Shown here: one piece after another, positions 5,606 through 27,938 of the stretch
How the letters are laid out: the number at the start of each line of letters is the position of its first letter
Position numbering within the stretch: the first letter of the stretch is position 1
Origin: Oopsacas minuta
Taxonomy: Eukaryota > Animalia > Porifera
DNA length: 64,000 bases
Reading direction: 5' to 3'
NCBI GenBank assembly: GCA_024704765.1
Contig: JAKMXF010000210.1
Coordinates: forward strand, 496,001-560,000
Translations under genes and position numbers: made by a program
Notes under the pieces: model-generated
What the model saw: only the letters and a program-made list of their open reading frames with translations
Told to the model about the DNA's origin: nothing
Database searches by the model: none

Positions 5606-8600
5606 TCATGAGTAGGTAAGCTCGATGGTACCCACAGCGTTGCAGATTTTATGTTCAAGATTATCGATGTAACGACATCTACAATAGTCAATAGTTTCCA
5701 CCTGACCAAGTATGCAGTCGCAATATTCGGTATTGTTTGGGAAATTCTTTTCACATTTACATCTTGCTTGTTGATCTACCGAGACAATTGTACACTCTCT
5801 CCCTCCAGGAAAGCATTCACAATTTCGGCACTGAGTTAATTCTTCTCTTGCCCGCACAAGAACCTCACTTGTGAGGGCATCAGTAATTGCGTCCCAGTTA
5901 CCGGTTTCATTTCTTCGAATAACCTTGAGATCCCAAACGTACCCTGTCGCATTTAGGGCGGTCTGTAGGTAGTCATTATGGATTTCCTCTCTTACTGAAT
6001 TATCTACAGTGTTTATAACCTCTGTATTTTCGAGTCTAAAAATCTCCTGAGAGCCTCCTACCCTATAGAAACATGTCTCAGCACTTGACACACCCAAACA
6101 ATCAATGGATGAGCCCCCATCATCTGTAGCTGTGAGAGTAACATCGATGATTTGAATAGGAATTATATTATTCTGTGTGAAAAGGTCCACGTAAAGTGAC
6201 CTACCAAAGTCAACGAAATTATTGAATAGAGAACTTGCAGCCTCAATCTCTTCGAAGCTGTCATAAAAGAAGTCTCTACGTTCATCTGTTACAAGGATGG
6301 CAAATCTTAAAGAATTTGGTCTTATTTGTGCGTATTTTTTCGCGAAATTCGTCGCTGCAAATCCATCTTCACGCTCCCCAATTTTAGGCAACCGCTTTAT
6401 TGTCTTTGTTACATTACTGTCATCGTTCATGTCGATTGTGAAATATACATTATCAGTAGGGCCACCTCTGTCAAGGTTTGGACCAACGAAATATGGGTTC
6501 TCTTTGTCACCTATACTGCCGAATGCGACAGCTGTGTATTGATTTTGATTGATTGTACTGTTTCCAACACAGCTTTCACGAAGTGAGCTCTCAAAACGTG
6601 GCAAGAAAGATCTCAAGAATTCATGTTCTGTATCCATAGATGCAGAAACGTCAATGATTAGTAAAATATCAGCGAAGAAATCTTCACCACAATCAGACTC
6701 GGTTAACAGGGTTTGACTCGCACCACAACATTCTACTGTAATTTCTACTGTACGAATATCTCCTGCACCATCTCTCTCAACACCTCTCTCAACACAGTCA
6801 TTACATGGACATTCAAATTCATATCTGTTTAGTCCAGTTACGACAGCCTGATATTTGTAGATGCAGAGATCTCTGATTGGTACCACGAGTTGATTTGGTC
6901 CACTGACGATTTGATCTGTGCGAATCAATTCAAGATTATTGTTTATTTCTCTGTGCCATTGAATTTCTTGGTCGAGAGAAAATGAATGAGCGAAGAGAGT
7001 GAGTGTTGCCTGTTTTGTTGCTATGTTAGAATCGCAGTTGGAGCATATTGTGCTGGTACTATCTGGATTGTTGTCACAAGAAACGACTGTCTGGACTATT
7101 AGATTGAAGGTATGTATGTCTTCTCCATACCGATTCCTAACAATAGAAGTATACTCTCCTGCACCATTAGATTGGAAGTTATGGATGATTATAGTCGCAG
7201 TATTACCTACATACTCAAAAGAGTAATCTACTCCTTGTATAAGTTCTACTCCTCCATAGAACCATTGGAAACTCCAAGGCCGTGTGCCCTCTCTGACAAT
7301 TCCTGTTATCCTCAGCTCTGAACCTGTCCTAGCAACAAGTGTTTGTCCGAATTGTGCCTGTGTCCCTGTGACTGTCCCTGAGATTGTCTTGTCCCATTTT
7401 GGTAAGATACCAATGGTAGTGAACTGTGTATCATTTCCGAATGCATTTTCTGCGATTAGAACATAGGAGCCCGCTATGTTGTCACCAACTTGTGAGAAAA
7501 CTAGATTATATGGATTTGTTTCAGAGACTGATGCATAGTTAGCTACTATGGATTGTTCAATAGGAATGAAATTCCCATTTACATCAACGTAGTACCAAGA
7601 TGTAGTGACAGGCTGTGTTCCCGCCCTGAGACGTGATCCAATTGTGAACATTGTCACTAGATCACCATCCAGTCCATAATACACTCTCTCTTCCATATTT
7701 CCAAATCCGCCTACATTGACTACCACATTGTCAGTTGTAATTGTGGTATTTCCTGAAGTCCATTCAAGGATTGGTGGTTCACCTCTAATACACGCTGAGC
7801 TTTCTTGACATGGCTGTAGGGTTCCTGACACACATCTGCACTCAACACATGCTTCCCTTTGTCCACATGCCAGACTGCTTCTTACGACAACATTGTTAAC
7901 AAATGCTTTGGTGAATGCATCTGTTTGGGAGCCCATCTTTTCGATGTCCCATGCGCTCCCTCCCCGACTCAAAGCTAACATAACATAGAAAATATCAATA
8001 GCTGACCCTGCTGAATTTTCTTTTACTTTACCTCCAGCTCTTTCTTCATAACCAGGCGGGTCTGATATGACTACTAATGCTTTTATACTACCATCAGTGT
8101 CTTTGTATATACCAAGTGCAGCATTTCCCTCACCATCTTCAAACTGAGCATCAACGATCACGTTTAGGATCACTTCTTCTCTGGCGAGTTCAGCTTCAAT
8201 AAAATCTCTGTCTAGTTCAGGAACAATAATATTACCATCCCGGAAACTCCCACAGTTAGCTCTTGGCCCATTTGTTATGAGTGTTATGTGTCGACACGAT
8301 TGATCTTGAAATTCTGCTGGGTATCTTCGCAGTGCTGAATAAATTGCGGCGTAACCGTCAGATGAAAATCCGGACGCTTCAAATTCGAACCCCACAATTA
8401 ATGGTGTAATTTCTACTGATGTACCACACAGGTCCTGAGGTGATATAGGGAATGATGTCCCATAACAACCCTCAGGTACACGATCATTATCTTGACCGAA
8501 TGTCATCAGACAGTACTGATTTAAACAAAGACTGTTCTCTTGCCCAAAGTTTATCTCAGCCAAGTTTCTTACCAGACGACCTGCAACATCTTTAACATTA

Positions 8601-10882
8601 TTATGGATATCTCCCATTGCACTTGTTTCAGCAACTGCGAATACCATATCTACGCACGAAGCCCGTCTGAAACCACTTATAATCTGTGTCATATTGCACT
8701 CAGTTGGACGACATTGATTTGTAGTATCAAAATCGAGTACTTCTATTTGATCACAGTTGTTAGTGCCATCAGTACATGAGCAGTTTTGACAGCCTACTAC
8801 CTCACAATTTTCGGGGGGAGGCTCATCCCTTATGGGCACATTAGGAATGATTTCATATATTAGGAAAGCTTTGGTGAAAGTTGTCCTGAAAGCTCTCGAT
8901 ACAGGCAGACTCCAAAGAATACCACCAGTAGCTCTGACCATCTCATAATAAGTATCTCTTGTGTTTTGTGTCTGATCACTAGCATCAGGAATTGTAAGTT
9001 GGATACCATCAGGGATGGACATCGTATCGAGAGTGTCATCATCTATCAAGTATAAAATTACATCATTTGGTAAGATGGCAAGAATCCGATCTTTGTCAAT
9101 ACCATAGGATGGATTAACCGTTATATTCAGATGCACAATAGCACTGAGGACGATACTAAATGTGTTCAGTGTTTGTGCCATATTTTGATTCAGTAGAGTT
9201 GGAATTCTAGTACTTGTTGGGTCAGGGGTGGGAGTTAAGTTATCGCGATCTTCGTCAGTTATGAGAACCACCTTACGACATGCAGGGTATATGTACTTAT
9301 ACTGTTGTAGTGCTCTGTAAATAGCTGCATATCCATCTTCCAATCTCCCTGCAGCCAAGAACTGAGATGCATTAACTAGATTTGTCAATTCTTCACTCGT
9401 CCCCCAGTAGTTTAAAAATTGTCCTTTATATGTTATTCCTCCTAAATCCAATATTCTACCAATATGATCTACACCTAGACTCCTATCAGCACCGAATCTG
9501 AGAACTCCATAATAATTGGTGCAAGTATCAGCAGAAACAAAACCGGATGCAGTTAATGCTATGTCGATTTCTTCAGATACCTGAGATAGCCAGATATGTT
9601 CAGGTCCCATTGATGCAGATTCATCGATGACATAGATTAAGTTGGTACACATTGCCGGCACGGCCTCTGTTTCTAGAAAAGTTGGTTCTTCGTTTGGATC
9701 GCACTCATCGAAACAAGGTCTATCGCGGATACATTGAAATGTGTTTCCATCACAGTAAACAAATCGGTCTATTGATGTATCATAGACGATTTGACCCAAT
9801 TCATAATCGCTGCAGTCAGAATTAAATGTAGAATTTAATTCTTTAATTATAATTCTCATCCCAACCGGTCCCTTGCTTCCAGTTTCCCCTTTAACTCCCT
9901 GATTTCCAACTGATCCTACATCCCCTTTATCTCCAGGCACACCCTTACTGCCTTTAGTACCCTTCCTCCCTTGATCCCCATTATCACCTCGACTTCCAAT
10001 TTCCCCATCATCACCTACTTCTCCAGGTGGTCCTGTCCCTGTTGGCCCTTGATCTCCTGGGTCTCCTTTCATTCCTATTGGTCCACCGTCACCTCTTTCG
10101 CCTTCTTCTCCAGGCTCTCCTTTGACGCCAGGTGACCCATCTGCTCCCGGGTCTCCAGCATCTCCCTGCCCACCTTGATCCCCTCGAGCTCCCATGTCTC
10201 CATCATTTCCCTTCTGTCCCCGAGGCCCATCATCTCCAGGAGCACCAACATCTCCATTCACTCCGGGCGGTCCTCGTTCACCATTGGGACCAGGTGCTCC
10301 TTTTTCCCCCTTTACCCCTGTCTCTGGTTTTGGGCATTCCTCAGGGTAACAAATACCAGGTAGTCCTGGCCTTCCCATGGCTCCTTCTTGACCTCTCGAT
10401 CCAGGATAGCCCTTCCCTCCCCTCACACCTCGGCAGCCATCAGGACAGTTTGGAGCTATTTGTAATTCAGTACATGCTGTTGTTTCAATTACTCCCTTGG
10501 TCTCGGCGACTGAGAAGGTGAGAATGCAACAATATTTGGCAGCTTCATTTTCTGTTACGTTGTAGATGCTTAGAGACATCTCAGTGTAACGACGAATGTT
10601 AGGGTATCCGACAACATTAAAACCATCATACTCGAGTCTATTATCGTTCAAATTCCAGTCTATAATAGGATTCTCATCTGGTACAGTACTGACTGGACAC
10701 CTGAGCTCAACTGAAGCTCCAGCACTTACTATAGCATTATCTCCTATGGTCACACGCGGAGTCGATATCCCGATGAGTTTGTATGTTTCTCCATTTCCAG
10801 CTAAGATTTCCCCTGTGTTTGCATTCTGTAGAAAAGCCACCAATACACATATCACCAGAATCCATGAAATTTTCGTTCCCAT
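5606..10882 (-). CDS. Secreted Ig - collagen - VWA - VWA - Ig - Ig - VWA protein, paralogue A (1758 aa, intronless)
   Basis: Signal peptide (ISWILVICVLVAFL), Ig domain (VELRC..W..AKYCC), Gly-X-Y region at 9854-10447, and three VWA-like domains (IYVIDESASM; VFAVAETSAM; LLIIDVSASM), each followed by a CxxCxCxxG-type motif. Two further Ig-like domains; no TM segment. Confidence 0.85.
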   Translation of the reverse strand: MGTKISWILVICVLVAFLQNANTGEILAGNGETYKLIGISTPRVTIGDNAIVSAGASVELRCPVSTVPDENPIIDWNLNDNRLEYDGFNVVGYPNIRRYTEMSLSIYNVTENEAAKYCCILTFSVAETKGVIETTACTELQIAPNCPDGCRGVRGGKGYPGSRGQEGAMGRPGLPGICYPEECPKPETGVKGEKGAPGPNGERGPPGVNGDVGAPGDDGPRGQKGNDGDMGARGDQGGQGDAGDPGADGSPGVKGEPGEEGERGDGGPIGMKGDPGDQGPTGTGPPGEVGDDGEIGSRGDNGDQGRKGTKGSKGVPGDKGDVGSVGNQGVKGETGSKGPVGMRIIIKELNSTFNSDCSDYELGQIVYDTSIDRFVYCDGNTFQCIRDRPCFDECDPNEEPTFLETEAVPAMCTNLIYVIDESASMGPEHIWLSQVSEEIDIALTASGFVSADTCTNYYGVLRFGADRSLGVDHIGRILDLGGITYKGQFLNYWGTSEELTNLVNASQFLAAGRLEDGYAAIYRALQQYKYIYPACRKVVLITDEDRDNLTPTPDPTSTRIPTLLNQNMAQTLNTFSIVLSAIVHLNITVNPSYGIDKDRILAILPNDVILYLIDDDTLDTMSIPDGIQLTIPDASDQTQNTRDTYYEMVRATGGILWSLPVSRAFRTTFTKAFLIYEIIPNVPIRDEPPPENCEVVGCQNCSCTDGTNNCDQIEVLDFDTTNQCRPTECNMTQIISGFRRASCVDMVFAVAETSAMGDIHNNVKDVAGRLVRNLAEINFGQENSLCLNQYCLMTFGQDNDRVPEGCYGTSFPISPQDLCGTSVEITPLIVGFEFEASGFSSDGYAAIYSALRRYPAEFQDQSCRHITLITNGPRANCGSFRDGNIIVPELDRDFIEAELAREEVILNVIVDAQFEDGEGNAALGIYKDTDGSIKALVVISDPPGYEERAGGKVKENSAGSAIDIFYVMLALSRGGSAWDIEKMGSQTDAFTKAFVNNVVVRSSLACGQREACVECRCVSGTLQPCQESSACIRGEPPILEWTSGNTTITTDNVVVNVGGFGNMEERVYYGLDGDLVTMFTIGSRLRAGTQPVTTSWYYVDVNGNFIPIEQSIVANYASVSETNPYNLVFSQVGDNIAGSYVLIAENAFGNDTQFTTIGILPKWDKTISGTVTGTQAQFGQTLVARTGSELRITGIVREGTRPWSFQWFYGGVELIQGVDYSFEYVGNTATIIIHNFQSNGAGEYTSIVRNRYGEDIHTFNLIVQTVVSCDNNPDSTSTICSNCDSNIATKQATLTLFAHSFSLDQEIQWHREINNNLELIRTDQIVSGPNQLVVPIRDLCIYKYQAVVTGLNRYEFECPCNDCVERGVERDGAGDIRTVEITVECCGASQTLLTESDCGEDFFADILLIIDVSASMDTEHEFLRSFLPRFESSLRESCVGNSTINQNQYTAVAFGSIGDKENPYFVGPNLDRGGPTDNVYFTIDMNDDSNVTKTIKRLPKIGEREDGFAATNFAKKYAQIRPNSLRFAILVTDERRDFFYDSFEEIEAASSLFNNFVDFGRSLYVDLFTQNNIIPIQIIDVTLTATDDGGSSIDCLGVSSAETCFYRVGGSQEIFRLENTEVINTVDNSVREEIHNDYLQTALNATGYVWDLKVIRRNETGNWDAITDALTSEVLVRAREELTQCRNCECFPGGRECTIVSVDQQARCKCEKNFPNNTEYCDCILGQVETIDYCRCRYIDNLEHKICNAVGTIELTYS
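7175..7622. repeat. 448-bp near-identical duplicate, copy in paralogue A (partner 24231-24678)
   Basis: Hand alignment at offset 17,056 shows 2 mismatches in 448 bp (7454 G/A; 7573 T/C). Confidence 0.95.
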
Positions 10883-10968
10883 ATTTTAGTTGCAGAGTTC
10901 TAAAAGCATAAACTTTACATAACGAAATCGCCTCAAATAATTATGAATAAACATTCGCTCCTTAATTA

Positions 10969-11120
10969 CAGTGGAACCCCGGAAATACGGTCACCCTCGG
11001 GACCGAGAAAAATGGCCGTAATTGTGAAACTTTTTGAAAGAAACCATATTCTATAGTATATTAACCGGGACTTTAAAAGTGGCCGCTATTCTGGGGTGGC
11101 CGTTAAGCGGGGTTCCAATC
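10969..11120. mobile_element. Degenerate Tc1/mariner-superfamily (pogo/Tigger-like) MITE, 152 bp
   Basis: Left end TA|CAGTGGAACCCCGGAAATACGGTCACC. Right end reverse-complemented GATTGGAACCCCGCTTAACGGCCACC, followed by TA. These form imperfect ~26-bp TIRs with TA flanks. The element is a GC-rich island in AT-rich DNA and has no transposase ORF. Confidence 0.7.
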
Positions 11121-11186
11121 TATATAATTTATATGAATAATTTTTATCCATTTTTGTTACTTTATGTTATTCTTAGATCGATAATA

Positions 11187-11516
11187 ATGGCATACTTTTG
11201 CCCTTATTGTGGAAACTTGCTTAATGTTGAAGTACGAGGTACTGATTCAAATAGGTTGGCCTGTATGACGTGTCCACATGTTTATGAAATTTTTCAACAG
11301 ATCGTTATTAAGCGTTACCCGAGATTGAAAGAGGTAGACGACGTGCTCGGCGGTTCTTCAGCCTGGGAAAATGTCGATTCAACGGAAGAAACTTGTCCAA
11401 AATGCAAACACAAGCGAGCTTACTACCTGCAAATACAAACCAGGTCTGCTGATGAGCCTATGACTGTATTTTACAAATGTTGTAACGTTCCATGTGGCCA
11501 TAGATGGAAGGATTAA
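11187..11516 (+). CDS. POLR3K: RNA polymerase III subunit RPC10/C11 (109 aa)
   Basis: [13 protein letters not shown]-terminal zinc ribbon and TFIIS-like C-terminal ribbon ([24 protein letters not shown]). The true start is ATG 11187; the TTG start in the ORF track lies inside the MITE. Confidence 0.96.
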
Positions 11517-11878
11517 GGATAGCACATAGTTGTGCTGAAAAGGATTTTGTTTGCCGTTAGTTTGTAAACATTGATTAAACTATTTGACAATCTTGTTTCC
11601 AAATGTAAAATTACCCTTCCCATTCATTACCATAATTTAATTGGTATCAGGCTTTTGTTTCCACATTTTATGTGTACCAAATTATTTCGTTACTAAATAT
11701 CTCATTAGCGAAGGGTTATTTTCAGGGCTGAGAGTCTGTGTAATATTACTGTACATTCATGTACCAGATGCCCCATACCCTGCCCTGGGTATGTACTATG
11801 TATTTTCATTTCTAATATTTCTACAAACATTTAGATCTGCTCAGAACTTTCCTTAATAGATTATTTTTATATACAAAT

Positions 11879-14341
11879 ATGAATTGGAAGTTATCACATA
11901 CTAATGTGAAGATTGGATGCTTTATCATATCATGTCTCTGTTATATAAATTCTCTGTGGGGAGATTTTTGTTTTGATGATATTTCAGCCATTGTAGAAAA
12001 CAAAGATCTACGTCCAGGAACTCCCTTACTAAACCTATTGCAAAATGATTTCTGGGGTACACCCATGCATATAGAGGGCAGTCACAAGTCTTATAGGCCT
12101 TTAACTATATTTACGTTCAGAATTAATTACTATTTTGACGGGTTGCAACCCATAAGCTATCATATTGTTAATGTCCTATTGCATGGGATAGTGACTTATT
12201 TGTTCACTTCATTCGTTTCAGAAATTTCAGATAATTGTTGTATTGCTCTAATTTCAGGATTGCTTTTTGCAATTCATCCTATTCACACTGAAGCCATTGC
12301 TGGTCTAGTTGGAAGAGCTGAATCTCTCTCGGGAATATTCTTTCTATTAGTTTTATTTATTTACTCAAGAGCAAGTAATCACACTGGTTTGATTTATTGT
12401 ATAGAGATGGTATTATTGTATCTAGCTACGCTCTGTTCAATTTTAAGTAAAGAAGTAGGTATCACTGTGATTGCAATTTGCTGTGTCTACGATGCTCTAT
12501 ACACTGAAAAAATAGTCGTATTAAATTTCTTGTTGCCAACTTCTCCTATAGTCTGGTTTAAGAAATATAGTAGTATTTTGAAACGAATCACTCACCTACT
12601 CATTTTCACGCTTACTATATTATTCCTACGCATTAAGATAAACGGTCCAGGTCTACCGAGTTTTACACCATTAGATAATCCAGCTAATTATTCTCCATTT
12701 CCCACGCGTCAATTATCTTTTCTATATCTTTGTTTTATTAATACAGGGCTACTCTTCTGCCCTTCCTTTTTATGTGCGGACTGGACCATGCAAACAGTAC
12801 CTTTGATAGAATCCCCGTTAGATCCCAGAAATATCCTTACTTTACTCACATTTTCAGGTTACTTTATGCTTGGAATATGGGCCATTTCAGATAATACCTA
12901 CGACAAGAGGTTAGTATTAATGGCTCTGTCTATTATTATATTCCCTTATATACCGGCCTCAAATCTATTCTTCCCGGTAGGATTTGTAATAGCAGAAAGG
13001 ATACTATATCTACCCAGCATGGGGATGTGTTTATTGGTCGCATTGGGAGTAAATAAGTTAATGAAAATTAGAAAAGTTAAATATCTATGTTATCTATTCC
13101 TTTGTATAACCTGCTTATTCTACTGTACGAAAACAATGGTTAGAAACTTGGATTGGTCGAATGATTATTCACTTTTCAAATCGGGAATTAAAATAAATAA
13201 ACATAATGCTAAACTCTACAACAACTTAGGACATGTGTTTGAAAACCGTGAGCAATATCAAGAGGCAGAAGAGCTGTTCCTTAAAGCATCAGGTATCCAA
13301 CCGGACGATACTGGTTCTTGGATTAATCTAGGACGAGTTTTGAAAGCACAAAAACGTTATAACGAATCTGAGCTAGCATTAAAAACTGCCCTGCAGCAAA
13401 TGCCTAATATTACTGAGAAAGGTCAGTCGTTTAGAATTGCTCCTAATTTCTTGAATGTGTATTTTAACTACGCTAATCTGTTATCACAAAATCCTACACG
13501 TTATAAAGAGGCCGAGAATTATTATAAGACAACTCTACGAGTACGTCCTGATATGCCAGAAGCACACATGAACTATGGAAACTTGCTAATTAAAATTGGA
13601 GATTTTGATTCGGCATTGTCGCATTTTCAGATGGCTATTGACAAGAAACCAGATTACGCAGATGCCTATTATAACATGGCTACTACTTACCTTAAGAAGA
13701 AGGATAGTGCTACCGGCGAAAAGAATTTAAGGATAACATTATCTCTAGATCCTAACCACATACATGGGCTAGTTAATCTCGCCAACCTCTTACTCGAATA
13801 TGATACCTTAAAATCTCGTGATGAAGCAATGCTCTTATTCAAAAGAGTATTAGAGATTGATCCCAGCAATGAGCTAGCGTTGTTTAGCCTTGGTCTACTC
13901 TTCTCAGATGATGGCTTACACCAACAGGCAGAGGAAATGTTCTTACAGACAGTCAATGTAAATCCATTACATAAAAGCGCTCTATTCAACCTCGGATTTT
14001 ATGCTCTGACTTTCAAGAATTTTGTAAAGTGTATTGAGTACTTAGGTATACTTGTTGCAAACTATCCAGCCCATTTCCGTGGTATTTTCAATCTAGCGGA
14101 TTGTTATATGCATATTTCTGATAGAGAAAACGCGAAATTATACTATAAATTAACGCTTGAATTAGATCCCAACTTTACACCTGCTCTACACAATTTAGGT
14201 GTAGCATTGGCTCAAGAAAATGATTTTTTGGAAGCTATCGCTCTATTTGAACAAGTTTTGATACTTGAACCAAGTCACCAGAATGCTAAAATATATTTAG
14301 ACCTCTCGAAAAACGAGTTATATGGTAAATCTAAGCATTAG
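11879..14341 (+). CDS. TMTC3: Protein O-mannosyltransferase TMTC3-like (GT-C membrane domain + TPR repeats)
   Basis: FCFDDISAIVENKDL..NDFWGTPM..SHKSYRPL, CADWTMQTVPL and NAKLYNNLGH..QPDD..RIAPNFLNVY match the TMTC3 subfamily. Multiple TPRs; intronless. Confidence 0.9.
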   Translation: MNWKLSHTNVKIGCFIISCLCYINSLWGDFCFDDISAIVENKDLRPGTPLLNLLQNDFWGTPMHIEGSHKSYRPLTIFTFRINYYFDGLQPISYHIVNVLLHGIVTYLFTSFVSEISDNCCIALISGLLFAIHPIHTEAIAGLVGRAESLSGIFFLLVLFIYSRASNHTGLIYCIEMVLLYLATLCSILSKEVGITVIAICCVYDALYTEKIVVLNFLLPTSPIVWFKKYSSILKRITHLLIFTLTILFLRIKINGPGLPSFTPLDNPANYSPFPTRQLSFLYLCFINTGLLFCPSFLCADWTMQTVPLIESPLDPRNILTLLTFSGYFMLGIWAISDNTYDKRLVLMALSIIIFPYIPASNLFFPVGFVIAERILYLPSMGMCLLVALGVNKLMKIRKVKYLCYLFLCITCLFYCTKTMVRNLDWSNDYSLFKSGIKINKHNAKLYNNLGHVFENREQYQEAEELFLKASGIQPDDTGSWINLGRVLKAQKRYNESELALKTALQQMPNITEKGQSFRIAPNFLNVYFNYANLLSQNPTRYKEAENYYKTTLRVRPDMPEAHMNYGNLLIKIGDFDSALSHFQMAIDKKPDYADAYYNMATTYLKKKDSATGEKNLRITLSLDPNHIHGLVNLANLLLEYDTLKSRDEAMLLFKRVLEIDPSNELALFSLGLLFSDDGLHQQAEEMFLQTVNVNPLHKSALFNLGFYALTFKNFVKCIEYLGILVANYPAHFRGIFNLADCYMHISDRENAKLYYKLTLELDPNFTPALHNLGVALAQENDFLEAIALFEQVLILEPSHQNAKIYLDLSKNELYGKSKH

Positions 14342-14937
14342 TTTTTAAACTTTTAATATAATATTTTGATATTAAATCACTTATTTGTTGAATTTTAACA
14401 ATTTTATTCTTAAAATACATAAAATTGGTATAAATTAGATAATTATTGAGATTACTAACCTGATATGGATGCTCTGATGATAAAATATCCTTTCTTCAAT
14501 CAAATTCAGTGAAAATTGAACTGTAAAATAAGAATAAATTATGCAAACAGACAATTTATAACTAGGCCGATGCTCATATTACTTTGTTTGCAATTTAACT
14601 CCACTAACAATTCTATATTCACTGTTAAACTCCTACTCTACAATAGAGTTGATTTCTAATTAACTTTCATTATCTATTCAGGAATTATCCAGAGTAGGCT
14701 ATACATTGACTATTTTTAATAAATCAATCCATGTAAACATGGCCTTGTAGTGAATATTGTGAGAGATCTACTAATTTTACTCGAATAAAAATGTGTTTGA
14801 TCACTGTGTTTATGTGAGTGGTTTTCGAATGAATAATTAATTTGTGTATTGGCTATCTTCCAGCATATTTGTATTAAATTCATGAATTTCTTTGATAATT
14901 TACATTATTTCACTGAAGATCTGTTATCAACTCTAAA

Positions 14938-15726
14938 ATGAATTTGAGTTTATTTATCAAGAATGTTTGCAATAAAATCACACTATCATTGGTAACCCCT
15001 ACAGTAAAACTTCCCATTGGATATATGTGTTTATCCCATGATGATACCATAAGAGGGATGCAAGACAATCCTTTCTTTGAGAAATATAAAAAGCAACTTC
15101 ATAAAGTTAAAAACAATTCGAATAACCAAATTCCTCGAAAGATACCTAATCAGCCACGAATTAATCTGAATAAAAATGATACCAAATCTCAGTCGAAACA
15201 ACCTTTGGATTCTATACTAGATATTAGCAAACTCTTGGATAATACCAGTGAAGAGATAGCTGATATTTGGAATAGTTACCATTCAAATTTAGATTGTATA
15301 CATGGTACACTTCCAGCAGACAGTTACACCCTTACATCTACTCAAGGTACTCTTTGTCCTTACTTTATCTACCCCTTACCCTCTGATACAGGGTATAAGT
15401 TCATGTTCCAACAGTTTTCTAATAACCAATTTCATTTCACTGCCCTAGAAGATTACAATTCATTAAAAGAACATGCTCCTGTCTATCTAAGTATGTCCTA
15501 CTACTCAGAGCTTGCTAAGGAGAAAGATATTGTTCTTATGGCTGGAAAGTTTGACCTAGAGAAGATGAAAACGGAAGAAGCACAGTTATTAGCTCATTTT
15601 GTGCAGTTATACTATGGACAAAACAACAAAGAGAGAATTGAACTTATAAGGAGTTTCAATTTTACTCCTAACTTGTTTGATTATAAACAACTTATACAGC
15701 AATTCAAACAACTCACTTTTATGTAA
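14938..15726 (+). CDS. ATPAF1: ATP synthase mitochondrial F1 assembly factor 1 (ATP11 family)
   Basis: NPFFEKY, LDSILDI..IADIWNSYH, PYFIYPLP, FTALEDY, ELAKEKDIVLM and EAQLL..VQLYY motifs. Confidence 0.9.
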   Translation: MNLSLFIKNVCNKITLSLVTPTVKLPIGYMCLSHDDTIRGMQDNPFFEKYKKQLHKVKNNSNNQIPRKIPNQPRINLNKNDTKSQSKQPLDSILDISKLLDNTSEEIADIWNSYHSNLDCIHGTLPADSYTLTSTQGTLCPYFIYPLPSDTGYKFMFQQFSNNQFHFTALEDYNSLKEHAPVYLSMSYYSELAKEKDIVLMAGKFDLEKMKTEEAQLLAHFVQLYYGQNNKERIELIRSFNFTPNLFDYKQLIQQFKQLTFM

Positions 15727-19680: not shown

Positions 19681-19803
19681 TTTTGCGATTGTACTCACTT
19701 CACACTTCTATCTAATGAAGAAATTCTCAAAAACGTAGGTTAGTATAATAGGTATTGCTTACTATTATTTGTTCTTATTTACAAAATATTAGATTTACAT
19801 GTA

Positions 19804-21360: not shown

Positions 21361-21506
21361 GCAGTTGTTTATACCATCTAGTTTTATGGAGATTTTACTT
21401 CCGAGATTAAAGTTATTTTCATCTAAATAATTGACAATAAATATGCGTGATTATTTGTGCGGGTTTTACACTTATTAAACACTTAGTTATACCTACTAAT
21501 TAAGAT

Positions 21507-22355
21507 ATGGCATCTTCATCAAAAGAGTTAGCGATAGACTCAATCATCCTACTTAACGACGGTGTTAAGATACCCACTTTTGGATTAGGAGTGTATCAAT
21601 CTCACCCAGGTGATGAAACTTATGAGGCAGTCCTGCATGCAATTAAAACTGGTTACTTATGTATTGACACAGCTGCTTTATATAAAAATGAAAAGGATGT
21701 TGGGAGAGCTATAAGGGATTCTAAGGTAACAAGAGAGAATATCTTCATAACCACTAAACTGTGGACAAACAAACACGGAACTAAAACTATTGAAGGTTTC
21801 CATGAGAGTCTGAAACAGCTAGACTTGAAGTATATTGATTTATATCTGATGCATTCTCCGAGGGGAGGTAATCTTGTTGAGACATGGCAATCTATGTTGA
21901 ATCTGAAATCTCAAGGGTTAGTGCGATCTATCGGAGTCTCAAACTTTGGCATTCACCATTTAGAGGAATTAAAACGACATTTTCCAAATTTTCCACCATC
22001 TGTGAACCAGATAGAAATTTCTCCCTACAGCACGAGAAAGGAATTAGTGGAATATTGTAAAAATAATGATATTCTAGTGCAGGCTTACTCTCCTCTCACT
22101 AAGGGAATTAAGTTGAATGATTCTGCATTGGTTGCCATAGCTAAAAAATATTCAAAAACTACAGCTCAAATTCTAATTCGATGGTCATTACAGCGAGGTT
22201 ATCAGGTGATACCAAAATCTGTGAAGAAGATAAGGATCGAAGAGAATGCGCAAATATTTGATTTCTCTATCACAGAAGATGATATGATTGAGTTAGATAG
22301 CTACAATATTAACCTTGTGACAGGTTGGGATCCAACCAATGATCCTTTGATGTAG
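21507..22355 (+). CDS. Aldo-keto reductase (AKR1/AKR5-like)
   Basis: Catalytic tetrad D (IDTA), Y (ALY), K (TTKLW), H (LMHSP); IGVSNF, QAYSPL and IPKS motifs. Confidence 0.93.
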   Translation: MASSSKELAIDSIILLNDGVKIPTFGLGVYQSHPGDETYEAVLHAIKTGYLCIDTAALYKNEKDVGRAIRDSKVTRENIFITTKLWTNKHGTKTIEGFHESLKQLDLKYIDLYLMHSPRGGNLVETWQSMLNLKSQGLVRSIGVSNFGIHHLEELKRHFPNFPPSVNQIEISPYSTRKELVEYCKNNDILVQAYSPLTKGIKLNDSALVAIAKKYSKTTAQILIRWSLQRGYQVIPKSVKKIRIEENAQIFDFSITEDDMIELDSYNINLVTGWDPTNDPLM

Positions 22356-22760
22356 GACATCTATTTGCTGATCGATTTCCAGCTAGTTTGTTCTTATTTA
22401 TCAACTTAGTTTCGTGTTTTAAAGTGCACACTATATCATGTATAATAGCCAGCTTTACGAGATTACATTTTATTATCCGTAGTCGTTTCTAATTTTTACT
22501 CTCAGTTCCATAATACAGTAGGAAAATAGCCATTTTGTAAAAAAGCATAGCGGCTATCGATTACCATACTTACACTACTTTAAAAATTATACTAAAATAT
22601 TGCATATGTATATTTAGTTATGTTGAAAGCACAACGATTTTTGTTCTAACGTATCTCTAAAATTAGACTGAATTATTCCCAAATCGAACAAATGTTTACA
22701 ACATTCAATACTTATCACATAATAAGATATTCATCTATTGCACACTATTACATACTGAAA

Positions 22761-25700
22761 TTAACTTGTAATTAATTGGCAAGGTTCTCCTGTATTTCTG
22801 GATAGATCTACGTTGAGACATTCACAATTTCCTGCTCCGTGTAACTGTTCACATTTACATAGTTCTTCTTCTGTAGAGGTAAGTTTCAAGGGTAAGCATT
22901 TAACATTACCTCCATAGAAACACCTACAGGTTTCACAGGTACCAGCTCTTATCCTTGTTACCACACTGCTGATAATGGTGTCACTAATTGCTTGCCTTTC
23001 CTCAGGGCCTCCGTTTATAATCGCATTTATATCCCATACGAATCCTCCAGCGTTTAACGAGGGTACAACAAAATCTTTGTGGATTTCCTCCATGTCTTCA
23101 TTACCTACCACGTTATTGACAATACTACCTCTTATCCTGTCTACACTAGTATCATTCCTTTGAGAATAGCACTGTAATAGATTAGAGGCTCCTATACAGT
23201 TATACGTGTCGTTCTGCTTTGTGTTTGCTGTGAGATTAGTGTTAACCAATAGAAGAGGGTGTAGTTCACGGATTGGATTATTATCTTTCAATGCCTCAGT
23301 GAACAAGGTTCTACCCTTATCTCCAAAGTTCTGAATTTGAAAATACGATTTCCCCGCCAAATCTACCTGAGAGTAGATACTCATGTCACTTTTCTTGTTT
23401 GTGCTCAAGATAAGAATTCGATTGTTTTTTGGCCTAACACGTTCGTTATTCAATGTCAATTTTACAGCTCCGTATGCTCCTCTACCCCCTATGTCTGTAG
23501 CTAAGCCAGTTACTTCTTCATGAAGTTTATCCAAGTTAGTGGTATTGTTTGGTGAAAATGTGAAATGATCTTCTCGAATAATTTCAGGTTCCATTTCGTT
23601 GATACTCATTCTTGTAGCTGTGTACTCGTTTCTCTCTTCTCCAATTCCAATACATACTTTGTTTAGTTGTTCTTCTAGATCCGGCAGGAGAATCTTAAAT
23701 ATGAAATCATTCACAGGTTTCATTTCAGTTGTTACATCTAGTACCAACATCACATTTACACCAGGTTCATTACCAGCGTTACAAGATTGGACCCAGACAT
23801 TTTCTTCTGTGCAACCAGCGATTTCTTTGCCATTCTTGAAACAGCTATTGACTGGACAATTGAACTTGATTGTATTATAGTAAGGTACGTCTACCTCGTA
23901 GTTATATTTACAAAATTCTGCGTAATTTAATGTTACATAGTTAGGTCCTAATTCGAGCGCTTTATTAGCGTATTCTTGTCTTGGTTCTGAATCATCTTGC
24001 TTGTACCAGGTCAGGTTCATGTCTGTCCTACCATTATGCATGTAAAATACTAATATTACTTCATCTGTAACGTTATTGTATGAACAAGAAGAACACATGG
24101 TTACGGTATCGGCAAGAATGTTGTCACATGAAATAGTTGTTTGGACTATCAGATTGAAAAAATGATTATCTTTCCTAAAACTATTGCCGCTACTTATAGT
24201 AACTGTGTATGATCCTGATAGCTGAGGGCCGAAGTTATGGATGATTATAGTCGCAGTATTACCTACATACTCAAAAGAGTAATCTACTCCTTGTATAAGT
24301 TCTACTCCTCCATAGAACCATTGGAAACTCCAAGGCCGTGTGCCCTCTCTGACAATTCCTGTTATCCTCAGCTCTGAACCTGTCCTAGCAACAAGTGTTT
24401 GTCCGAATTGTGCCTGTGTCCCTGTGACTGTCCCTGAGATTGTCTTGTCCCATTTTGGTAAGATACCAATGGTAGTGAACTGTGTATCATTTCCGAATGC
24501 ATTTTCTGCAATTAGAACATAGGAGCCCGCTATGTTGTCACCAACTTGTGAGAAAACTAGATTATATGGATTTGTTTCAGAGACTGATGCATAGTTAGCT
24601 ACTATGGATTGTTCAATAGGAATGAAATCCCCATTTACATCAACGTAGTACCAAGATGTAGTGACAGGCTGTGTTCCCTCTGTCAGGCGTGAACTTATAG
24701 TGAAAGTTGACACCAGATCACCATCCAGTCCATAATATACTGTTACTTCATTAGGGCCGTATCCCCCTACAAGCGCTAGTATATCGTCATCTGTAATTGT
24801 GATTATACCAGAGCTAGAGGTAAATGCTAGAGTTGGTGGCAAACCAGGAACAGCACAAACCTCACTCTCTTCACATCGCTGTAGTTCTCCTCCAATGCAC
24901 TTACACTCTACACAAGCTCTAGTTTGTCCACAAGACTCACTGCTCTTAATTACAACTGCCTTGACGAATGCTCGCGTGAAAAGATCTGTTTGTTCATCAC
25001 CCATAGCCCTTATGTTCCATGCACTTCCATTCAGCCCAATTGCTAGATTAATATAGTTCTGTTGGATATTCTCTCCAGCTTCCTTGACTTTACCTCCAGA
25101 CATGAGTTCGTACCCCAGGACTGCACTACTGTTGGGTACAACTGCTGTAATACTCCCGTCTATTTCTTGAAATATACCGATTGCTTCATTACCATTCTCA
25201 TCCTGAAATGTAGCATTGACGATAACATTGAGAACAATGTTAGCTCTTTGGAGGTCAGCCATGATTTCGTGTGTGTCTAGTTGTGGAATGATAGATTCTC
25301 CATCAGTGTGAGATCCACAATCGTATCTCTGTGTATCTGTGATGAGTGTTATGTGACGACAAGATTGTGATTGGAAATTGATGCTGTATGTCTGTAGTGC
25401 TGTGTGTATTGCTGCGTAACCATCAGCTTGTTGTCCTGTGGCTGTTAAGTTTAATCCAACAATAAGTGGAGCTAATTGAGATGAAGGTGCACATAACTTG
25501 TTCCCACGTGGGATAGGAAATGGATATGAGTAACAACGATCACTGATCCTATCATTATCCGCTCCGTATCCCATAATACAGTACTTGTTTGGACAGATAC
25601 TATTCTCCTGTCCAAAGTTGATCTTTGCTAGATTAGTAGGTAGTCTTATGGCTACATCTTTGATAGCAATATGTGCTGCTTGCATTGTATCCGTTTCTGC

Positions 25701-27938
25701 TACTGCGAATATCATATCTACACATGCAGGCTGTCTGAATCCAGAGATGACTTGTGTTGTATTACATTCCGTGGGTCTACATTGTGTGGTCGTGTTAAAA
25801 TCGATTGATCGGATTAGTTTGCAGTCATAATTTCCATCTTCACATATACATCTGTTACAGGAATCCAGTTTACAAGTATTATTTAATGTTACATGTGGAA
25901 TAACTTCATACTCTAGAAATGCATTAGTGAATGCTTCTCTGTATGTCCTAGAGGCGGGAAGACTCCATGCAATGCCACCAGTTTCTCTGACCATCTGGAA
26001 GTACGTTTGTTCCGTGTTACCTGCTGCCGAATCCTTCCTCACATACCCATCTGGGGCTGTATTGAATTGACCTGGCATATTCGCATCATAGTAGATAACA
26101 GAGTTATTTGGTAAGAGACCCATAATGGTGTTTGCATTGATGAGTGGCTGTCGGTTGTCCTGTGCTTGGAATTGAATGCTGATAACTGCACTGAGAGTAA
26201 TGCTGAATTGTGTGAGTATCTGCTGCATGTTTTGATTGAAGAGTGTAGGAACACGATCATAAGGAGGGTCTGGTGTAGGTGTTTCATTGTCTCTGTCCTC
26301 ATCTGTAATGAGTAGAATATTTCTACATGCTTGTCCTGTGAATGTGTATCTCTGTAATGCTCTGTAGATAGCTGCATAGCCGTCTTCTTTCCTTCCCTCA
26401 CCTTGGAAGGGATCTTCATTGATTACTCTTATCACAGCTTCATTATTTCCCCAGTAGGGTATAGTATTCCCTTCCTGGTCAATGATCCCTCCTAAATCTA
26501 TAGGTCTCCCTATCTGTTCAGCTCTTGACTTCTCTTCACCTGTACCGAATCCTAGAACAGCAAAATTGTTATTACACATTCCTGGGTCGTAGTTGCGTAC
26601 TGCTAGTACCTCCGGGATGGCATTAGAGACATTCTTCAACCAGATCTGTTCCTCCTTCATGGAAGCTGATTCATCAATAATGTAGATAAGGTTCATACAG
26701 TTTGTATTTACATCAGATGCAATGGTGTTGAATGGTAGTTCATCTTCTTGGCAGGTTGGATAACATGGTTTGTCCTGAATGCATTGGAAATGTGTGCCAT
26801 CACAGTAGACAAAACTTCCTATCACAGTGTCGTATATAATTTGTCCAGATTCATATTGTGTACAATCTGTATTATAGGTTGAGTTTATTGCACTGATGAT
26901 GATTCTCTGTCCAATTTTTCCTTTTTCCCCCCTTTCTCCTTTCCTACCTCTTTCTCCTTTTATTCCTGTGGGCCCCTCATCCCCAGGTAATCCTTTGTCA
27001 CTCTTTTGTCCTTTTGTTCCATTATTACCCATTTCTCCCATCTTTCCTATTTCTCCTTTTTCCCCTATATCTCCCTTTGGTCCTACTATCATCTCACCCT
27101 CTTCGCCCTTTTCTCCTTTCATTCCTCGTTCACCCTTTCCCCCGCTTACCCCTTCTTCCCCACGCTCTCCCTCAATACCCTGCTCTCCATTTTCACCATT
27201 TCTCCCATTTTCCCCCTTTTCCCCAATCTCTCCCTCTCTTCCTTTCTCTCCCTTATCCCCTACAGTTCCGTTTGTTCCATCTTTTCCACTTTCCCCTATA
27301 TTACCTTTTGCTCCATCTTCTCCTCTCGCCCCTTTTGCTCCATATATTCCCTTACTTCCATTAATGCCCTTCTTATAACAAACATTTGGATCACATAATC
27401 CTTGTACTCCCTGGATTCCCATCTCCCCTGTATCTCCTCTCTGTCCTTGCACCCCTTTCTTTCCCTTTCGTCCCATACAATTATCTGAACACTCTCCCAA
27501 CACTTCTAATTTAGTCATGCCTCTGTCCAATTCTTCACCTGTATTCACATCACGGAGAACACACTCATATGTGCCAGTATACAGAGTCGTTGTGTTAATT
27601 ATAATCATTTCGTTTCCTGAATATTGCCTTATATTAGGGAATATGATAGAGTTGAAGCTATCAAATATGACCTGTCTATCATTGAATACCCACTCTATTA
27701 TTACTTCATCTCCTAGGTCTGTTGTTGTCTCACAAATAATTGTAACTTCAGAATTAGAAGTAACAATCGCATTCTGTCCAATCAATACACGATAATCCCT
27801 ATACCCGAACAGATTCAGCATCTTGAATCTATGATTATTTTCAATATTGATCCCATTTACTTCTGACAGTATCGCTACTGTTAAGAACGTGAATAATAGT
27901 AACATTAATCTTTCCATTTTATTTCTTGCTACTTCCAT
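22761..27938 (-). CDS. Secreted Ig - collagen - VWA - VWA - Ig - Ig - VWA protein, paralogue B (1725 aa, intronless)
   Basis: Collinear with 5606-10882: signal peptide, Ig, Gly-X-Y region at 26904-27491, VWA1 (IYIIDESASM), VWA2 (IFAVAETDTM), two Ig-like domains, VWA3 (LVLDVTTEM) and a Cys-rich tail. Confidence 0.85.
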   Translation of the reverse strand: MEVARNKMERLMLLLFTFLTVAILSEVNGINIENNHRFKMLNLFGYRDYRVLIGQNAIVTSNSEVTIICETTTDLGDEVIIEWVFNDRQVIFDSFNSIIFPNIRQYSGNEMIIINTTTLYTGTYECVLRDVNTGEELDRGMTKLEVLGECSDNCMGRKGKKGVQGQRGDTGEMGIQGVQGLCDPNVCYKKGINGSKGIYGAKGARGEDGAKGNIGESGKDGTNGTVGDKGEKGREGEIGEKGENGRNGENGEQGIEGERGEEGVSGGKGERGMKGEKGEEGEMIVGPKGDIGEKGEIGKMGEMGNNGTKGQKSDKGLPGDEGPTGIKGERGRKGERGEKGKIGQRIIISAINSTYNTDCTQYESGQIIYDTVIGSFVYCDGTHFQCIQDKPCYPTCQEDELPFNTIASDVNTNCMNLIYIIDESASMKEEQIWLKNVSNAIPEVLAVRNYDPGMCNNNFAVLGFGTGEEKSRAEQIGRPIDLGGIIDQEGNTIPYWGNNEAVIRVINEDPFQGEGRKEDGYAAIYRALQRYTFTGQACRNILLITDEDRDNETPTPDPPYDRVPTLFNQNMQQILTQFSITLSAVISIQFQAQDNRQPLINANTIMGLLPNNSVIYYDANMPGQFNTAPDGYVRKDSAAGNTEQTYFQMVRETGGIAWSLPASRTYREAFTNAFLEYEVIPHVTLNNTCKLDSCNRCICEDGNYDCKLIRSIDFNTTTQCRPTECNTTQVISGFRQPACVDMIFAVAETDTMQAAHIAIKDVAIRLPTNLAKINFGQENSICPNKYCIMGYGADNDRISDRCYSYPFPIPRGNKLCAPSSQLAPLIVGLNLTATGQQADGYAAIHTALQTYSINFQSQSCRHITLITDTQRYDCGSHTDGESIIPQLDTHEIMADLQRANIVLNVIVNATFQDENGNEAIGIFQEIDGSITAVVPNSSAVLGYELMSGGKVKEAGENIQQNYINLAIGLNGSAWNIRAMGDEQTDLFTRAFVKAVVIKSSESCGQTRACVECKCIGGELQRCEESEVCAVPGLPPTLAFTSSSGIITITDDDILALVGGYGPNEVTVYYGLDGDLVSTFTISSRLTEGTQPVTTSWYYVDVNGDFIPIEQSIVANYASVSETNPYNLVFSQVGDNIAGSYVLIAENAFGNDTQFTTIGILPKWDKTISGTVTGTQAQFGQTLVARTGSELRITGIVREGTRPWSFQWFYGGVELIQGVDYSFEYVGNTATIIIHNFGPQLSGSYTVTISSGNSFRKDNHFFNLIVQTTISCDNILADTVTMCSSCSYNNVTDEVILVFYMHNGRTDMNLTWYKQDDSEPRQEYANKALELGPNYVTLNYAEFCKYNYEVDVPYYNTIKFNCPVNSCFKNGKEIAGCTEENVWVQSCNAGNEPGVNVMLVLDVTTEMKPVNDFIFKILLPDLEEQLNKVCIGIGEERNEYTATRMSINEMEPEIIREDHFTFSPNNTTNLDKLHEEVTGLATDIGGRGAYGAVKLTLNNERVRPKNNRILILSTNKKSDMSIYSQVDLAGKSYFQIQNFGDKGRTLFTEALKDNNPIRELHPLLLVNTNLTANTKQNDTYNCIGASNLLQCYSQRNDTSVDRIRGSIVNNVVGNEDMEEIHKDFVVPSLNAGGFVWDINAIINGGPEERQAISDTIISSVVTRIRAGTCETCRCFYGGNVKCLPLKLTSTEEELCKCEQLHGAGNCECLNVDLSRNTGEPCQLITS
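24231..24678. repeat. 448-bp near-identical duplicate, copy in paralogue B (partner 7175-7622)
   Basis: Same alignment. The ORF track also gives identical antisense peptides at 7284-7466 and 24340-24522. Confidence 0.95.

Follow-up and report, generated by a model that had tools for sequence, protein, structure and literature searches.

The genes described here, located in a window of 64,000 nucleotides of Oopsacas minuta contig JAKMXF010000210.1 (positions 496,001 to 560,000), encode two large proteins that, as judged from their sequences, represent the giant version, seen in glass sponges, of a hitherto undescribed family of collagens distributed over three sponge classes. Gene A (5606..10882 of the window, minus strand; 1758 aa), identified from the open reading frame list and its translation, and gene B (22761..27938, minus strand; 1725 aa) both have uninterrupted coding sequences, share the same domain order and yield collinear proteins with 46% identity over 1710 columns. 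The initial annotation, generated from the DNA sequence alone, had correctly recognized this collinear pair on one strand and had also described the genes as intronless, which holds for the coding sequences and fails for gene A, because its 5'UTR contains an intron.

This GT...AG intron spans 3,560 nt (10900..14459, minus strand) and was delimited by a spliced RNA contig end together with its donor and acceptor. The acceptor, ttttAG, ends 17 nt ahead of the ATG at 10882. The non-coding first exon, whose 3' end lies at 14460..14477 (minus strand) and reads ...CATATCAG before the donor GTTAGT, is matched exactly and uniquely by a 16-nt loose end of the RNA contig at 10901, and a TATAAA sequence is found nearby, at about 14556-14561. 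Two genes identified via Pfam are nested within the intron on the plus strand: an RPB9-like gene (11034-11516) and a TMTC gene (11879-14341). A first exon like that of gene A was sought for gene B, and none was found. Transcripts of gene A reach a very high depth: in RNA-type run X4, a single run that was picked because gene A is present in it, assembled contigs show a word depth of about 28,000-100,000 across region 5497-11012, versus 237-2,340 in the flanks, a ratio put at 100-fold or more, and the contig covering gene A has no internal joints. A contaminant or viral origin of the two genes was rejected on account of their animal-type flanking genes, the recurrence of the gene order and the splicing of gene A. 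Two other glass-sponge assemblies preserve the gene order around B, and one of these also preserves the order around A. The two genes also share a gene-conversion tract of 448 bp with 2 mismatches (7175..7622, minus strand, equivalent to 24231-24678 in gene B) that presents about twofold depth in DNA runs X1-X3; outside the tract, third-codon-position identity between A and B is 0.27-0.58. The Ig cassette is closer between A and B than the remaining protein in every comparison, and the comparisons made in other species gave no demonstration of recurrent A-B conversion.

Protein A opens with a signal peptide (residues 1-23; 10814..10882, minus strand) that coincides with its top hydropathy window. 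Beyond the N-terminal signal, no 19-residue window in A or B exceeds a Kyte-Doolittle value of 1.5, and both proteins hence look secreted, in agreement with the signal peptide and absence of transmembrane segments noted initially. A and B contain 61 and 54 cysteines and 14 and 23 N-glycosylation sequons, respectively. The signal peptide of A is followed by an Ig domain (residues 36-143; 10454..10777, minus strand), matched by Pfam ig and Ig_3 at residues 42-124, and by a disulfide-flanked mini-helix (residues 146-183; 10334..10447, minus strand) made up of C-x3-C, 10 Gly-X-Y triplets (residues 149-178) and G-I-C-x4-C, the cysteine positions of which are kept in all orthologs and in the demosponge short forms described below. 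The main triple-helix region (residues 189-343; 9854..10318, minus strand) consists of runs of 31 and 20 triplets separated by a conserved two-residue GT break at 282-283. With stretches of 10, 31 and 20 Gly-X-Y triplets, A has the long repeats that characterize the collagen superfamily, and the Pfam Collagen model matches A with an E-value of 1e-24 and B with 9e-25. In B, the mini-helix and main helix (residues 156-345; 26904..27473, minus strand) are nearly without proline, have Glu in the X and Lys in the Y position, and present the break at the same position as in A plus one Gly-to-Ser break. Proline accounts for 12% and then 3.5% of the residues in the two runs of the A main helix and for 0-7% in B. 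Given that the helices are poor in proline, their thermal stability would have to rest on charge pairs.

The helix leads into a neck (residues 344-395; 9698..9853, minus strand) that holds a conserved NST sequon alongside the motif C..GxIxYD..(F/Y)xxC(D/N)Gxx(F/W)xC..C..C. The neck is strongly conserved and is predicted by AF2 to form a three-stranded beta unit; outside glass sponges, it was found only behind the helices of short-form sponge collagens. The neck, the cysteine knots and the position of the break are kept across orthologs (59-69% identity) and between A and B. Protein-atlas scores (< 0.8) hint weakly at a phage Mtd_N or collagen-tail-fiber-type module; tblastn lent this candidate no support, the best match of the neck among 50,697 phage records having an E-value of 5. 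The N-terminal Ig, short Gly-X-Y stretch, Cys motif, 51-triplet collagen (31 + 20) and Cys neck of the initial annotation are thus all present.

The C-terminal heads contain three modules that had been annotated as VWA domains. The VWA fold of these modules was borne out, and their assignment to the canonical VWA domain of collagens VI, VII, XII and XIV was not. The A/B modules score 17.3-19.4 bits against Pfam VWA and 17-19.5 against VWA_2, below the respective cut-offs of 23.8 and 27, and the first (V1) and second (V2) modules alone give no Pfam match; membership in PF00092 was rejected on these grounds. The modules are nonetheless called VWA because of their structural matches, their profile links and the existence of intermediate relatives that do pass Pfam VWA. 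An AF2 model over V1 and V2 (pLDDT 70) has as its top Foldseek match PTMP1 (E 1.5e-11, ~610 columns) and also matches the collagen VI C-terminal region (9gtu_C; E 1.2e-7), with integrin beta-I and alpha-I domains likewise among the matches of the heads. The hhalign probability is 99.6% for V1-V2 and 97.5% for V1-V3, and the three modules are linked at 96-99.6%. They constitute a distinct domain of ~270 aa, for which the name VWA* is coined here, with a near-invariant signature (DESGSM..EH.W / EDGY / TDEDRD). The subfamily to which they belong is a separate one that also occurs in bacterial PEP-CTERM proteins; it is about 250-290 aa long and defined by the blocks D..VDESGSM..EH.W, EDGY, TDEDRD, Y..LA and GG.AWDL.

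The first VWA* of A (residues 405-692; 8807..9670, minus strand), delimited with AF2 and Foldseek, the profile and the signature table, keeps DESAS, EDGY and TDEDRD intact and carries nearly all blocks of the subfamily. Its metal-site block is invariant in 11 glass-sponge sequences, and also across 174 family domains. The second (residues 738-1010; 7853..8671, minus strand), which forms a sister clade to V1 in the tree, has a degenerate metal-site block (AETSA, with TNGPRA), and this block is degenerate in all orthologs. The third (V3; residues 1398-1686; 5825..6691, minus strand) retains DVSAS, EDGF and TDERRD, carries most blocks and presents in its AF2 model the same order of secondary-structure elements as V1. 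The third VWA* of B (residues 1388-1669; 22932..23777, minus strand) is, like V2, without metal-site residues (DVTTE, with TNKKSD). A VWA* profile search returned 555 matches, 295 of them at E <= 1e-10; a profile built from residues 345-1040 and run against PDB sequences gave no match.

As annotated initially, a CxxCxC motif stands behind each VWA-type module and the protein ends in a cysteine-rich tail. In A, the linker that opens with CxxCxCxxG spans residues 693-737 (8672..8806, minus strand), and the final CxxCxC and tail, predicted with low pLDDT, span residues 1687-1758 (5609..5824, minus strand), with invariant cysteine positions in both. Between the second and third VWA*, where two Ig domains had been reported, three tandem Ig-like domains were identified (residues 1036-1385; 6728..7777, minus strand) via Pfam I-set and an AF2 model (m919ffb1adfdf) searched with Foldseek, which matches three-Ig fragments of titin (I67-I69) over ~350 columns with E 2e-15. 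The third of these domains contains Cys. Searches of the neck, the Cys linkers, the tail and the third Ig-like domain against Pfam at E-values up to 5 returned nothing meaningful, and furin sites are absent, save for one RGRR in sequence P0008. The layout of A and B, as thus confirmed and corrected, is far beyond chance.

The full architecture, with its three VWA* domains, was found only in glass-sponge assemblies, and the gene order was confirmed in two. The suggestion that the class is lineage-specific therefore applies to the giant form and not to its core (mini-helix, GxCxxxxC knot, main helix, beta neck, VWA*, CxxCxC), which also occurs in a demosponge, Ephydatia muelleri, and in a homoscleromorph, Oscarella pearsei, as unnamed proteins of ~600-680 aa. 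The former are encoded on the same contig by EMCRGX_G025231 and G025228 (613 and 620 aa; both "hypothetical protein"), and the latter correspond to transcripts of 683 and 685 aa. When P0185-P0190, P0087 and P0117 were scanned for motifs and domains and compared with A and B, all showed the same order, namely a signal peptide, a mini-helix (9-10 triplets in the short forms) ending in GxCxxxxC, a main helix (39-60 triplets), the neck motif and VWA*, with D(D/E)SGSM in the short forms. The Ephydatia proteins also contain a motif of the CxxCxC type (CRRCxC), which the Oscarella proteins (P0117, P0170) lack. In contrast to A and B, the short forms are a third of the size, have one VWA* rather than three and present neither an N-terminal Ig nor an Ig cassette; their VWA* clusters with Sycon domains in the tree, and not with glass-sponge V1/V2. 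The collagen class was thus found in Hexactinellida, Demospongiae and Homoscleromorpha, three of the four sponge classes, and VWA* also in Calcarea. Cell-surface or matrix-type proteins of other sponges combine VWA* with EGF, Sushi, TSP1, LamG, Ig and MNNL-DSL domains. The Ig cassette of the giant form comprises 1, 3 or at least 15 domains across paralogs and species. No described family with the A/B architecture was found in the literature, nor were the gene identifiers of the Ephydatia relatives in the literature searched, and database relatives are either unnamed or "hypothetical". Together with the lack of a PDB profile match, this upholds the claim of an undescribed architecture.

Comparison with known systems places A and B, by prediction from their sequences, among secreted, non-fibrillar collagen chains. 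With the VWA-containing collagens (VI, VII, XII, XIV, XX-XXII and XXVIII) they share the VWA fold, and not the canonical VWA domain. A comparable layout is that of collagen VI (and XXVIII), in which a short Cys-stabilized triple helix also precedes tandem VWA-fold globular domains; the best structural matches of A include the C-terminal region of collagen VI. Collagen VI carries VWA domains on both sides of a ~335-residue helix, as well as Kunitz and FN3 domains. The N-terminal side of A and B, by contrast, is an Ig without VWA, the helix measures 155 residues plus a 30-residue mini-helix, the VWA subfamily is different, Ig domains are present and Kunitz and FN3 are not. By analogy with collagen VI, it is conceivable that A and B, as linked paralogous chains, form a heterotrimer. 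FACIT collagens (IX, XII, XIV and relatives) are similarly multidomain, non-fibrillar and equipped with VWA-fold modules and GxCxxxxC, a motif of two cysteines with four residues between them located right behind the helix at the FACIT COL1/NC1 junction. In A and B, however, Pfam detects neither TSPN nor FN3, GxCxxxxC ends the N-terminal mini-helix instead of marking a C-terminal junction, and the globular domains are arrayed on the C-terminal side, whereas FACITs have them on the N-terminal one. PTMP1 (mussel byssus proximal thread matrix protein 1) and the matrilins are extracellular connectors with tandem VWA-fold domains; PTMP1, which binds collagen, has ~10% sequence identity to A/B and no collagen helix.

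VWA* is shared only by sponge matrix-type proteins and bacterial PEP-CTERM surface proteins. The latter are exosortase-sorted proteins of ~300 aa that have a VWA-like ectodomain, match the profile with E-values of 1e-25 to 1e-15, carry D..VDESGSM..EH.W, EDGY, TDEDRD and GG.AWDL and have a PEP-CTERM tail confirmed with TIGR02595 and PF07589. Unlike A and B, they consist of a single Cys-free domain, are sorted to the membrane and contain neither collagen nor Ig nor CxxCxC. One branch splits bacteria from sponges in the IQ-TREE phylogeny (SH-aLRT 80), which is better modeled, whereas FastTree mixes some bacteria-like rows with V1/V2; no donor or direction of horizontal transfer emerged from the trees. 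A far-reaching and rather unlikely scenario is that the core was a sponge-wide invention whose head came from a single exchange with bacterial PEP-CTERM biofilm or floc proteins, that in glass sponges, where a basement-membrane toolkit is missing, A and B (in some species with a chain C) are obligate heterotrimers forming the principal mesohyl network, and that the labile Ig cassette sets its mesh size.

It appears somewhat probable that A and B build a disulfide-locked trimeric rod with metal-dependent adhesive heads that forms a network in the mesohyl. The conserved beta neck, which directly follows the helix on its C-terminal side, would join three chains, and the trimer would be locked by Cys knots at the ends of the mini-helix (C-x3-C and G-x-C-x4-C). 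The resulting rod, ~45-55 nm long and with one conserved flexible break, would bear three Ig domains on its N-terminal side and, on the C-terminal one, three arms arranged as VWA*-VWA*-Ig-Ig-Ig-VWA* with Cys-rich joints. VWA* domains with DxSxS / EDG / TDE (in A, V1 and V3; in B, V1 alone) may engage acidic groups on partner molecules with the help of a cation, and V2, having lost the block in every ortholog, may act as a structural or protein-docking module. Multivalent heads and Cys-rich joints could then cross-link molecules into a network within the thin collagenous mesohyl, analogous to collagen VI or to matrilin/PTMP1-type connectors. Glass sponges are without collagen IV, nidogen and perlecan (PMC10280926), and their most strongly expressed genes include collagens (PMC10282587). 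Against the network reading speak the low proline content of the main helices and the extra Gly-substitution breaks in B, and a kinked short rod with a neck and globular heads would suit a soluble recognition molecule equally well.

Defense collagens (collectins, C1q and ficolins) combine an N-terminal Cys region, a short broken stalk, a neck and C-terminal heads. The 51-triplet stalk with its single conserved break, the N-terminal Cys region, the neck and the globular heads of A and B resemble that group, and an oligomer of this kind would use its heads to recognize microbes or particles for opsonization or symbiont management. The bacterial surface proteins that are the only non-sponge relatives of the head, as well as the variable copy number and gene conversion of the Ig cassette, speak for such a role. 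It is nonetheless improbable, since VWA*/Ig heads take the place of CRD, gC1q or FReD (no C-type lectin, gC1q or fibrinogen-related head was found by Pfam or among the Foldseek matches listed for two models), the neck is predicted to be beta and not coiled coil, the heads are well conserved across species (59-74% identity) instead of diversified, and the very high transcript depth of gene A better suits a bulk structural protein. The A and B chains also differ from those of defense collagens in being 5-8x longer.

Such abundance, in a conserved linked pair, could also befit a collagen that coats, templates or cements siliceous spicules. One study describes four collagens, in two gene pairs conserved in Aphrocallistes vastus and O. 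minuta, that show high expression and are up-regulated where growth takes place (PMC10282587), and A and B might be among these osculum-up-regulated A. vastus collagens. That study, however, gives neither identifiers nor architecture for its four genes, and the O. minuta genome has other collagen pairs. The spicule collagen described for glass sponges is fibrillar, rich in Hyp and marked by a Gly-3Hyp-4Hyp motif (PMC5867623); the near-absence of GPP triplets (two in A, none in B) argues against identity with it, and a paper on silica-associated proteins makes no mention of collagen (PMC10772126). A skeletal role is consequently judged about as doubtful as a defensive one. Less likely still is an integrin ligand or aggregation-type factor tying the trabecular syncytium to the mesohyl without assembling into a network. 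Ig and VWA-type domains are typical adhesion modules, and the VWA* proteins of other sponges are of cell-surface or matrix type, but RGD and KGD motifs are not conserved among orthologs, no transmembrane segment or anchor is present and Pfam detects no aggregation-factor-like domains.

The family described here adds a nameless class to sponge collagens beyond the usual spongins, type-IV-like, fibrillar and glass-sponge spicule types (PMC12749355, PMC5867623), with glass-sponge members that have been enlarged to at least 1,700 aa, one of them (gene A) very deeply transcribed. VWA* emerges as a well-defined VWA subfamily whose members in A and B score below the Pfam thresholds, and its only non-sponge relatives being bacterial PEP-CTERM proteins raises the question of whether sponges and bacteria exchanged genes in the distant past. 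Chain B offers to biophysics a nearly proline-free animal collagen that is predicted to be charge-stabilized. In animals without collagen IV, nidogen and perlecan, this class could be a main building block of the mesohyl, and it would thereby provide a concrete target for understanding how early animals built their matrices.

The two neighbouring giant collagen-type genes, A (5606-10882, minus strand, 1758 aa) and B (22761-27938, minus strand, 1725 aa), were each recovered as an open reading frame, and BLASTP aligned their translations end to end at 46% identity. In each translation, Pfam identified a Collagen domain (E about 1e-24) together with Ig-type domains. Each chain opens with a hydrophobic signal, no further 19-residue window exceeding a Kyte-Doolittle value of 1.5, and both harbor numerous N-glycosylation sequons and many cysteines (61 in A, 54 in B). 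Counting of Gly-X-Y triplets in A delineated a mini-helix of 10 triplets (residues 149-178), flanked N-terminally by C-x3-C and ending in G-I-C-x4-C, and a main helix of 31 + 20 triplets (residues 189-343) with a two-residue break at 282-283, the position of which is identical in B and in every orthologue. Based on the reading frames, BLASTP collinearity, domain matches, Gly-X-Y pattern, signal peptide, hydropathy and cysteine content, the layout proposed for the pair in the initial annotation is therefore essentially right. The helix register is common to both chains, whereas composition differs: the A helix is acidic with some proline, and the B collagen region (26904-27473, minus strand) is nearly proline-free (0-7%), with Glu dominant at X and Lys dominant at Y, recalling charge-stabilised bacterial collagen-like proteins. 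Given the same register and break but different composition, an A/B heterotrimer may be possible.

The VWA-type modules of A and B score only 17-19 bits in Pfam, below threshold, and a sequence-profile search of the PDB with the region at residues 345-1040 returned no match. AF2 modeling with an 11-sequence alignment resolved this region of A into two alpha/beta domains (pLDDT 70), for which the best Foldseek match, spanning both domains, was the mussel byssal two-VWA protein PTMP1 (E 1.5e-11), followed by the collagen VI C-terminal region and integrin beta-I and alpha-I domains. Residues 1036-1758 were modeled as three tandem Ig-like sandwiches followed by a third alpha/beta domain (pLDDT 71), and the Ig cassette between the second and third VWA-type modules matched three-Ig titin fragments (E 2e-15, about 350 columns). 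The tandem Ig domains initially reported before the last VWA are thus present, but they number three rather than two. In profile-profile comparisons the three modules (V1 to V3, from N- to C-terminus) matched one another at probabilities of 99.6% (V1-V2), 97.5% (V1-V3) and 96.2% (V2-V3).

An exhaustive HMMER profile search for the distinct VWA-fold subfamily to which these modules belong (VWA*) yielded 555 matches among 1.84 billion representatives, 295 of them at E <= 1e-10. The best 150 of the 555 were inspected by name, most having none, and no named match from a non-sponge animal was present among them. The matches comprise glass-sponge orthologues, matrix-type proteins of other sponges (Sycon ciliatum, Oscarella pearsei, O. 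lobularis), in which VWA* occurs alongside EGF, Sushi, TSP1, LamG, Ig, MNNL-DSL or carbonic anhydrase domains, and bacterial proteins. Many of the latter are of about 300 aa with a terminal PEP-CTERM sorting signal (TIGR02595, PF07589), others are cysteine-free giants of 3,000-7,500 aa, and the bacterial members too are barely detected by Pfam. Across 174 domains the subfamily presents the signature D..VDESGSM..EH.W, N.Y.LVGFG, G..EDGY.AI, ILLTDEDRD, DY..LA, GG.AWDL. The metal-site block is kept in V1 of both chains (DESAS, EDGY and TDEDRD in A), lost in V2 of both (AETSA and TNGPRA in A, and likewise in every orthologue), and in V3 kept in A and lost in B. In a tree of 76 domains (IQ-TREE, LG+C20), one branch (SH-aLRT 80) parts the 44 bacterial rows from the 32 sponge rows; the tree does not reveal which way any putative exchange between the two groups went. 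V1 and V2 are sisters, and V1, V2 and V3 are each monophyletic across A and B, indicating that the three-head layout is older than the A/B duplication.

Ten database proteins with the full architecture were recovered, 49-66% identical and each from an ENA assembly; both A and B have orthologues among them. The inspected contigs, from ERZ20067936 and ERZ25071281, are of glass sponges with matching gene order, the order around B being repeated in both assemblies and that around A in ERZ20067936. The genes among and around A and B (RIMBP-like SH3 protein, multi-exon transglutaminase, RPB9-like, TMTC, ATP11, VIT-VWA, carboxyltransferase, aldo-keto reductase, Ank-MYND) are ordinary animal genes; these neighbors and the recurring gene order rule out a contaminant or viral origin. 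The transglutaminase (2759-5154, plus strand), of animal type (Transglut_N, core, C), lies tail-to-tail with gene A, and in a second glass sponge it again adjoins the orthologue of A; a role as cross-linking partner is conceivable, as is plain synteny. Between A and B sits a gene for a VIT and canonical VWA protein resembling inter-alpha-trypsin-inhibitor heavy chains (15954-18314, plus strand), a position kept in two other glass sponges.

Outside glass sponges, shorter proteins of about 600-680 aa share the core plan: a signal peptide, a mini-helix of 9-10 triplets ending in GxCxxxxC, a main helix of 39-60 triplets, the same neck motif as A and B, and one VWA*. These occur in the demosponge Ephydatia muelleri, where P0185 and P0186 are linked paralogues on one contig, each annotated as "hypothetical protein", in Oscarella pearsei and in several further contigs. 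CRRCxC follows VWA* in the forms from Ephydatia and the further contigs; the Oscarella form is without CxxCxC. At least three sponge classes thus possess the VWA*-collagen family, and the lineage specificity claimed for the whole class holds for the giant form alone, which is restricted to glass sponges.

The Ig cassette varies in copy number. B orthologues in two other species have uninterrupted reading frames with only one Ig of the cassette, and a third paralogue, found in other glass sponges and read over 1,958 aa in one species, carries the three-Ig cassette in tandem, in about five repeats, followed by a V3 and tail nearly identical to those of the A orthologue. Within the window, a 448-bp gene-conversion tract in the cassette of A (7175-7622), with a sharp boundary at 7175, is identical to B (24231-24678) save for 2 mismatches, with third codon positions near saturation outside the tract. 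The variable copy number and this near-identical tract together identify the cassette as an evolutionarily labile spacer. The third paralogue is called as a 3,203-aa gene between ATP11 and TMTC (ERZ20067936, L001:1-5877; also L003:22459-24470); at that position in the window, the TMTC-ATP11 gap is only about 600 bp.

The gene A locus is present in four runs of one sample, three DNA-like and one RNA-like (X4). The DNA-like runs show even depth, approximately doubled at 7175-7622, and contigs that extend into adjacent genes. In X4, word depth is about 28,000-100,000 over 5497-11012, with flanks at 2,340 and 237 and no internal joints. Very high expression of gene A is well indicated, although this depth, derived from assembled contigs of one run picked because it holds gene A, is not a quantified expression level. 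An X4 contig departs from the genome at 10901, at a ttttAG acceptor ending 17 nt before the ATG, and its 16 loose letters have an exact, unique match at 14462-14477 (minus strand), followed by AG|GTTAGT. Gene A therefore consists of a first exon without coding sequence (3' end at 14460, minus strand), a 3,560-nt GT-AG 5'UTR intron (within 10900-14477, minus strand) and an uninterrupted coding sequence, so that "intronless" is accurate for the latter only. The RPB9-like and TMTC genes both lie complete within this intron, on the opposite strand. With this structure, an acceptor just 5' of the start codon can be explained by ordinary cis-splicing, and spliced-leader trans-splicing is not required. 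In the DNA-like runs, a short element inside the intron (10961-11045) is covered at 10-20x the depth of its surroundings and is the endpoint of many contigs with differing flanks; it has no second copy in the window and is a high-copy repeat.

By established collagen biology, the chains would form a trimer nucleated by the conserved neck, a predicted beta unit at the C-terminal end of the main helix, and locked by the cysteine knots flanking the mini-helix. From the resulting rod (about 45 nm plus about 9 nm, interrupted by a single flexible break), three Ig domains would project at the N-terminal end and three long arms at the C-terminal end. In an A3 trimer the arms would present up to six metal-site-bearing VWA* domains, with cysteine-rich joints that may provide covalent cross-links, a design that would suit a network or connector role by analogy with collagen VI, matrilins or PTMP1. 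Such a role fits the high transcript depth of A, the abundance of collagen transcripts reported for glass sponges (PMC10282587) and the missing basement-membrane genes, Oopsacas being without collagen IV, nidogen and perlecan (PMC10280926).

Other roles appear less plausible. Association with spicules is unlikely. Chemical descriptions of glass-sponge spicule collagen give a high Hyp content and a Gly-3Hyp-4Hyp motif (PMC5867623), a mismatch with the two GPP triplets of A and the absence of any in B. A soluble defence collagen is similarly improbable. A function as adhesion ligand seems somewhat more doubtful still.

By membership tests, A and B belong neither to collagen VI nor to the FACIT or defence collagens. 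As initially proposed, no described family with this architecture was found: the literature searched contained no description of it or of the VWA* subfamily, and relatives are named only "hypothetical" or "uncharacterized" in databases. The parts of A and B are of familiar kinds, and their function, as inferred, resembles that of the VWA-bearing non-fibrillar collagens. The A/B family bears on matrix evolution.
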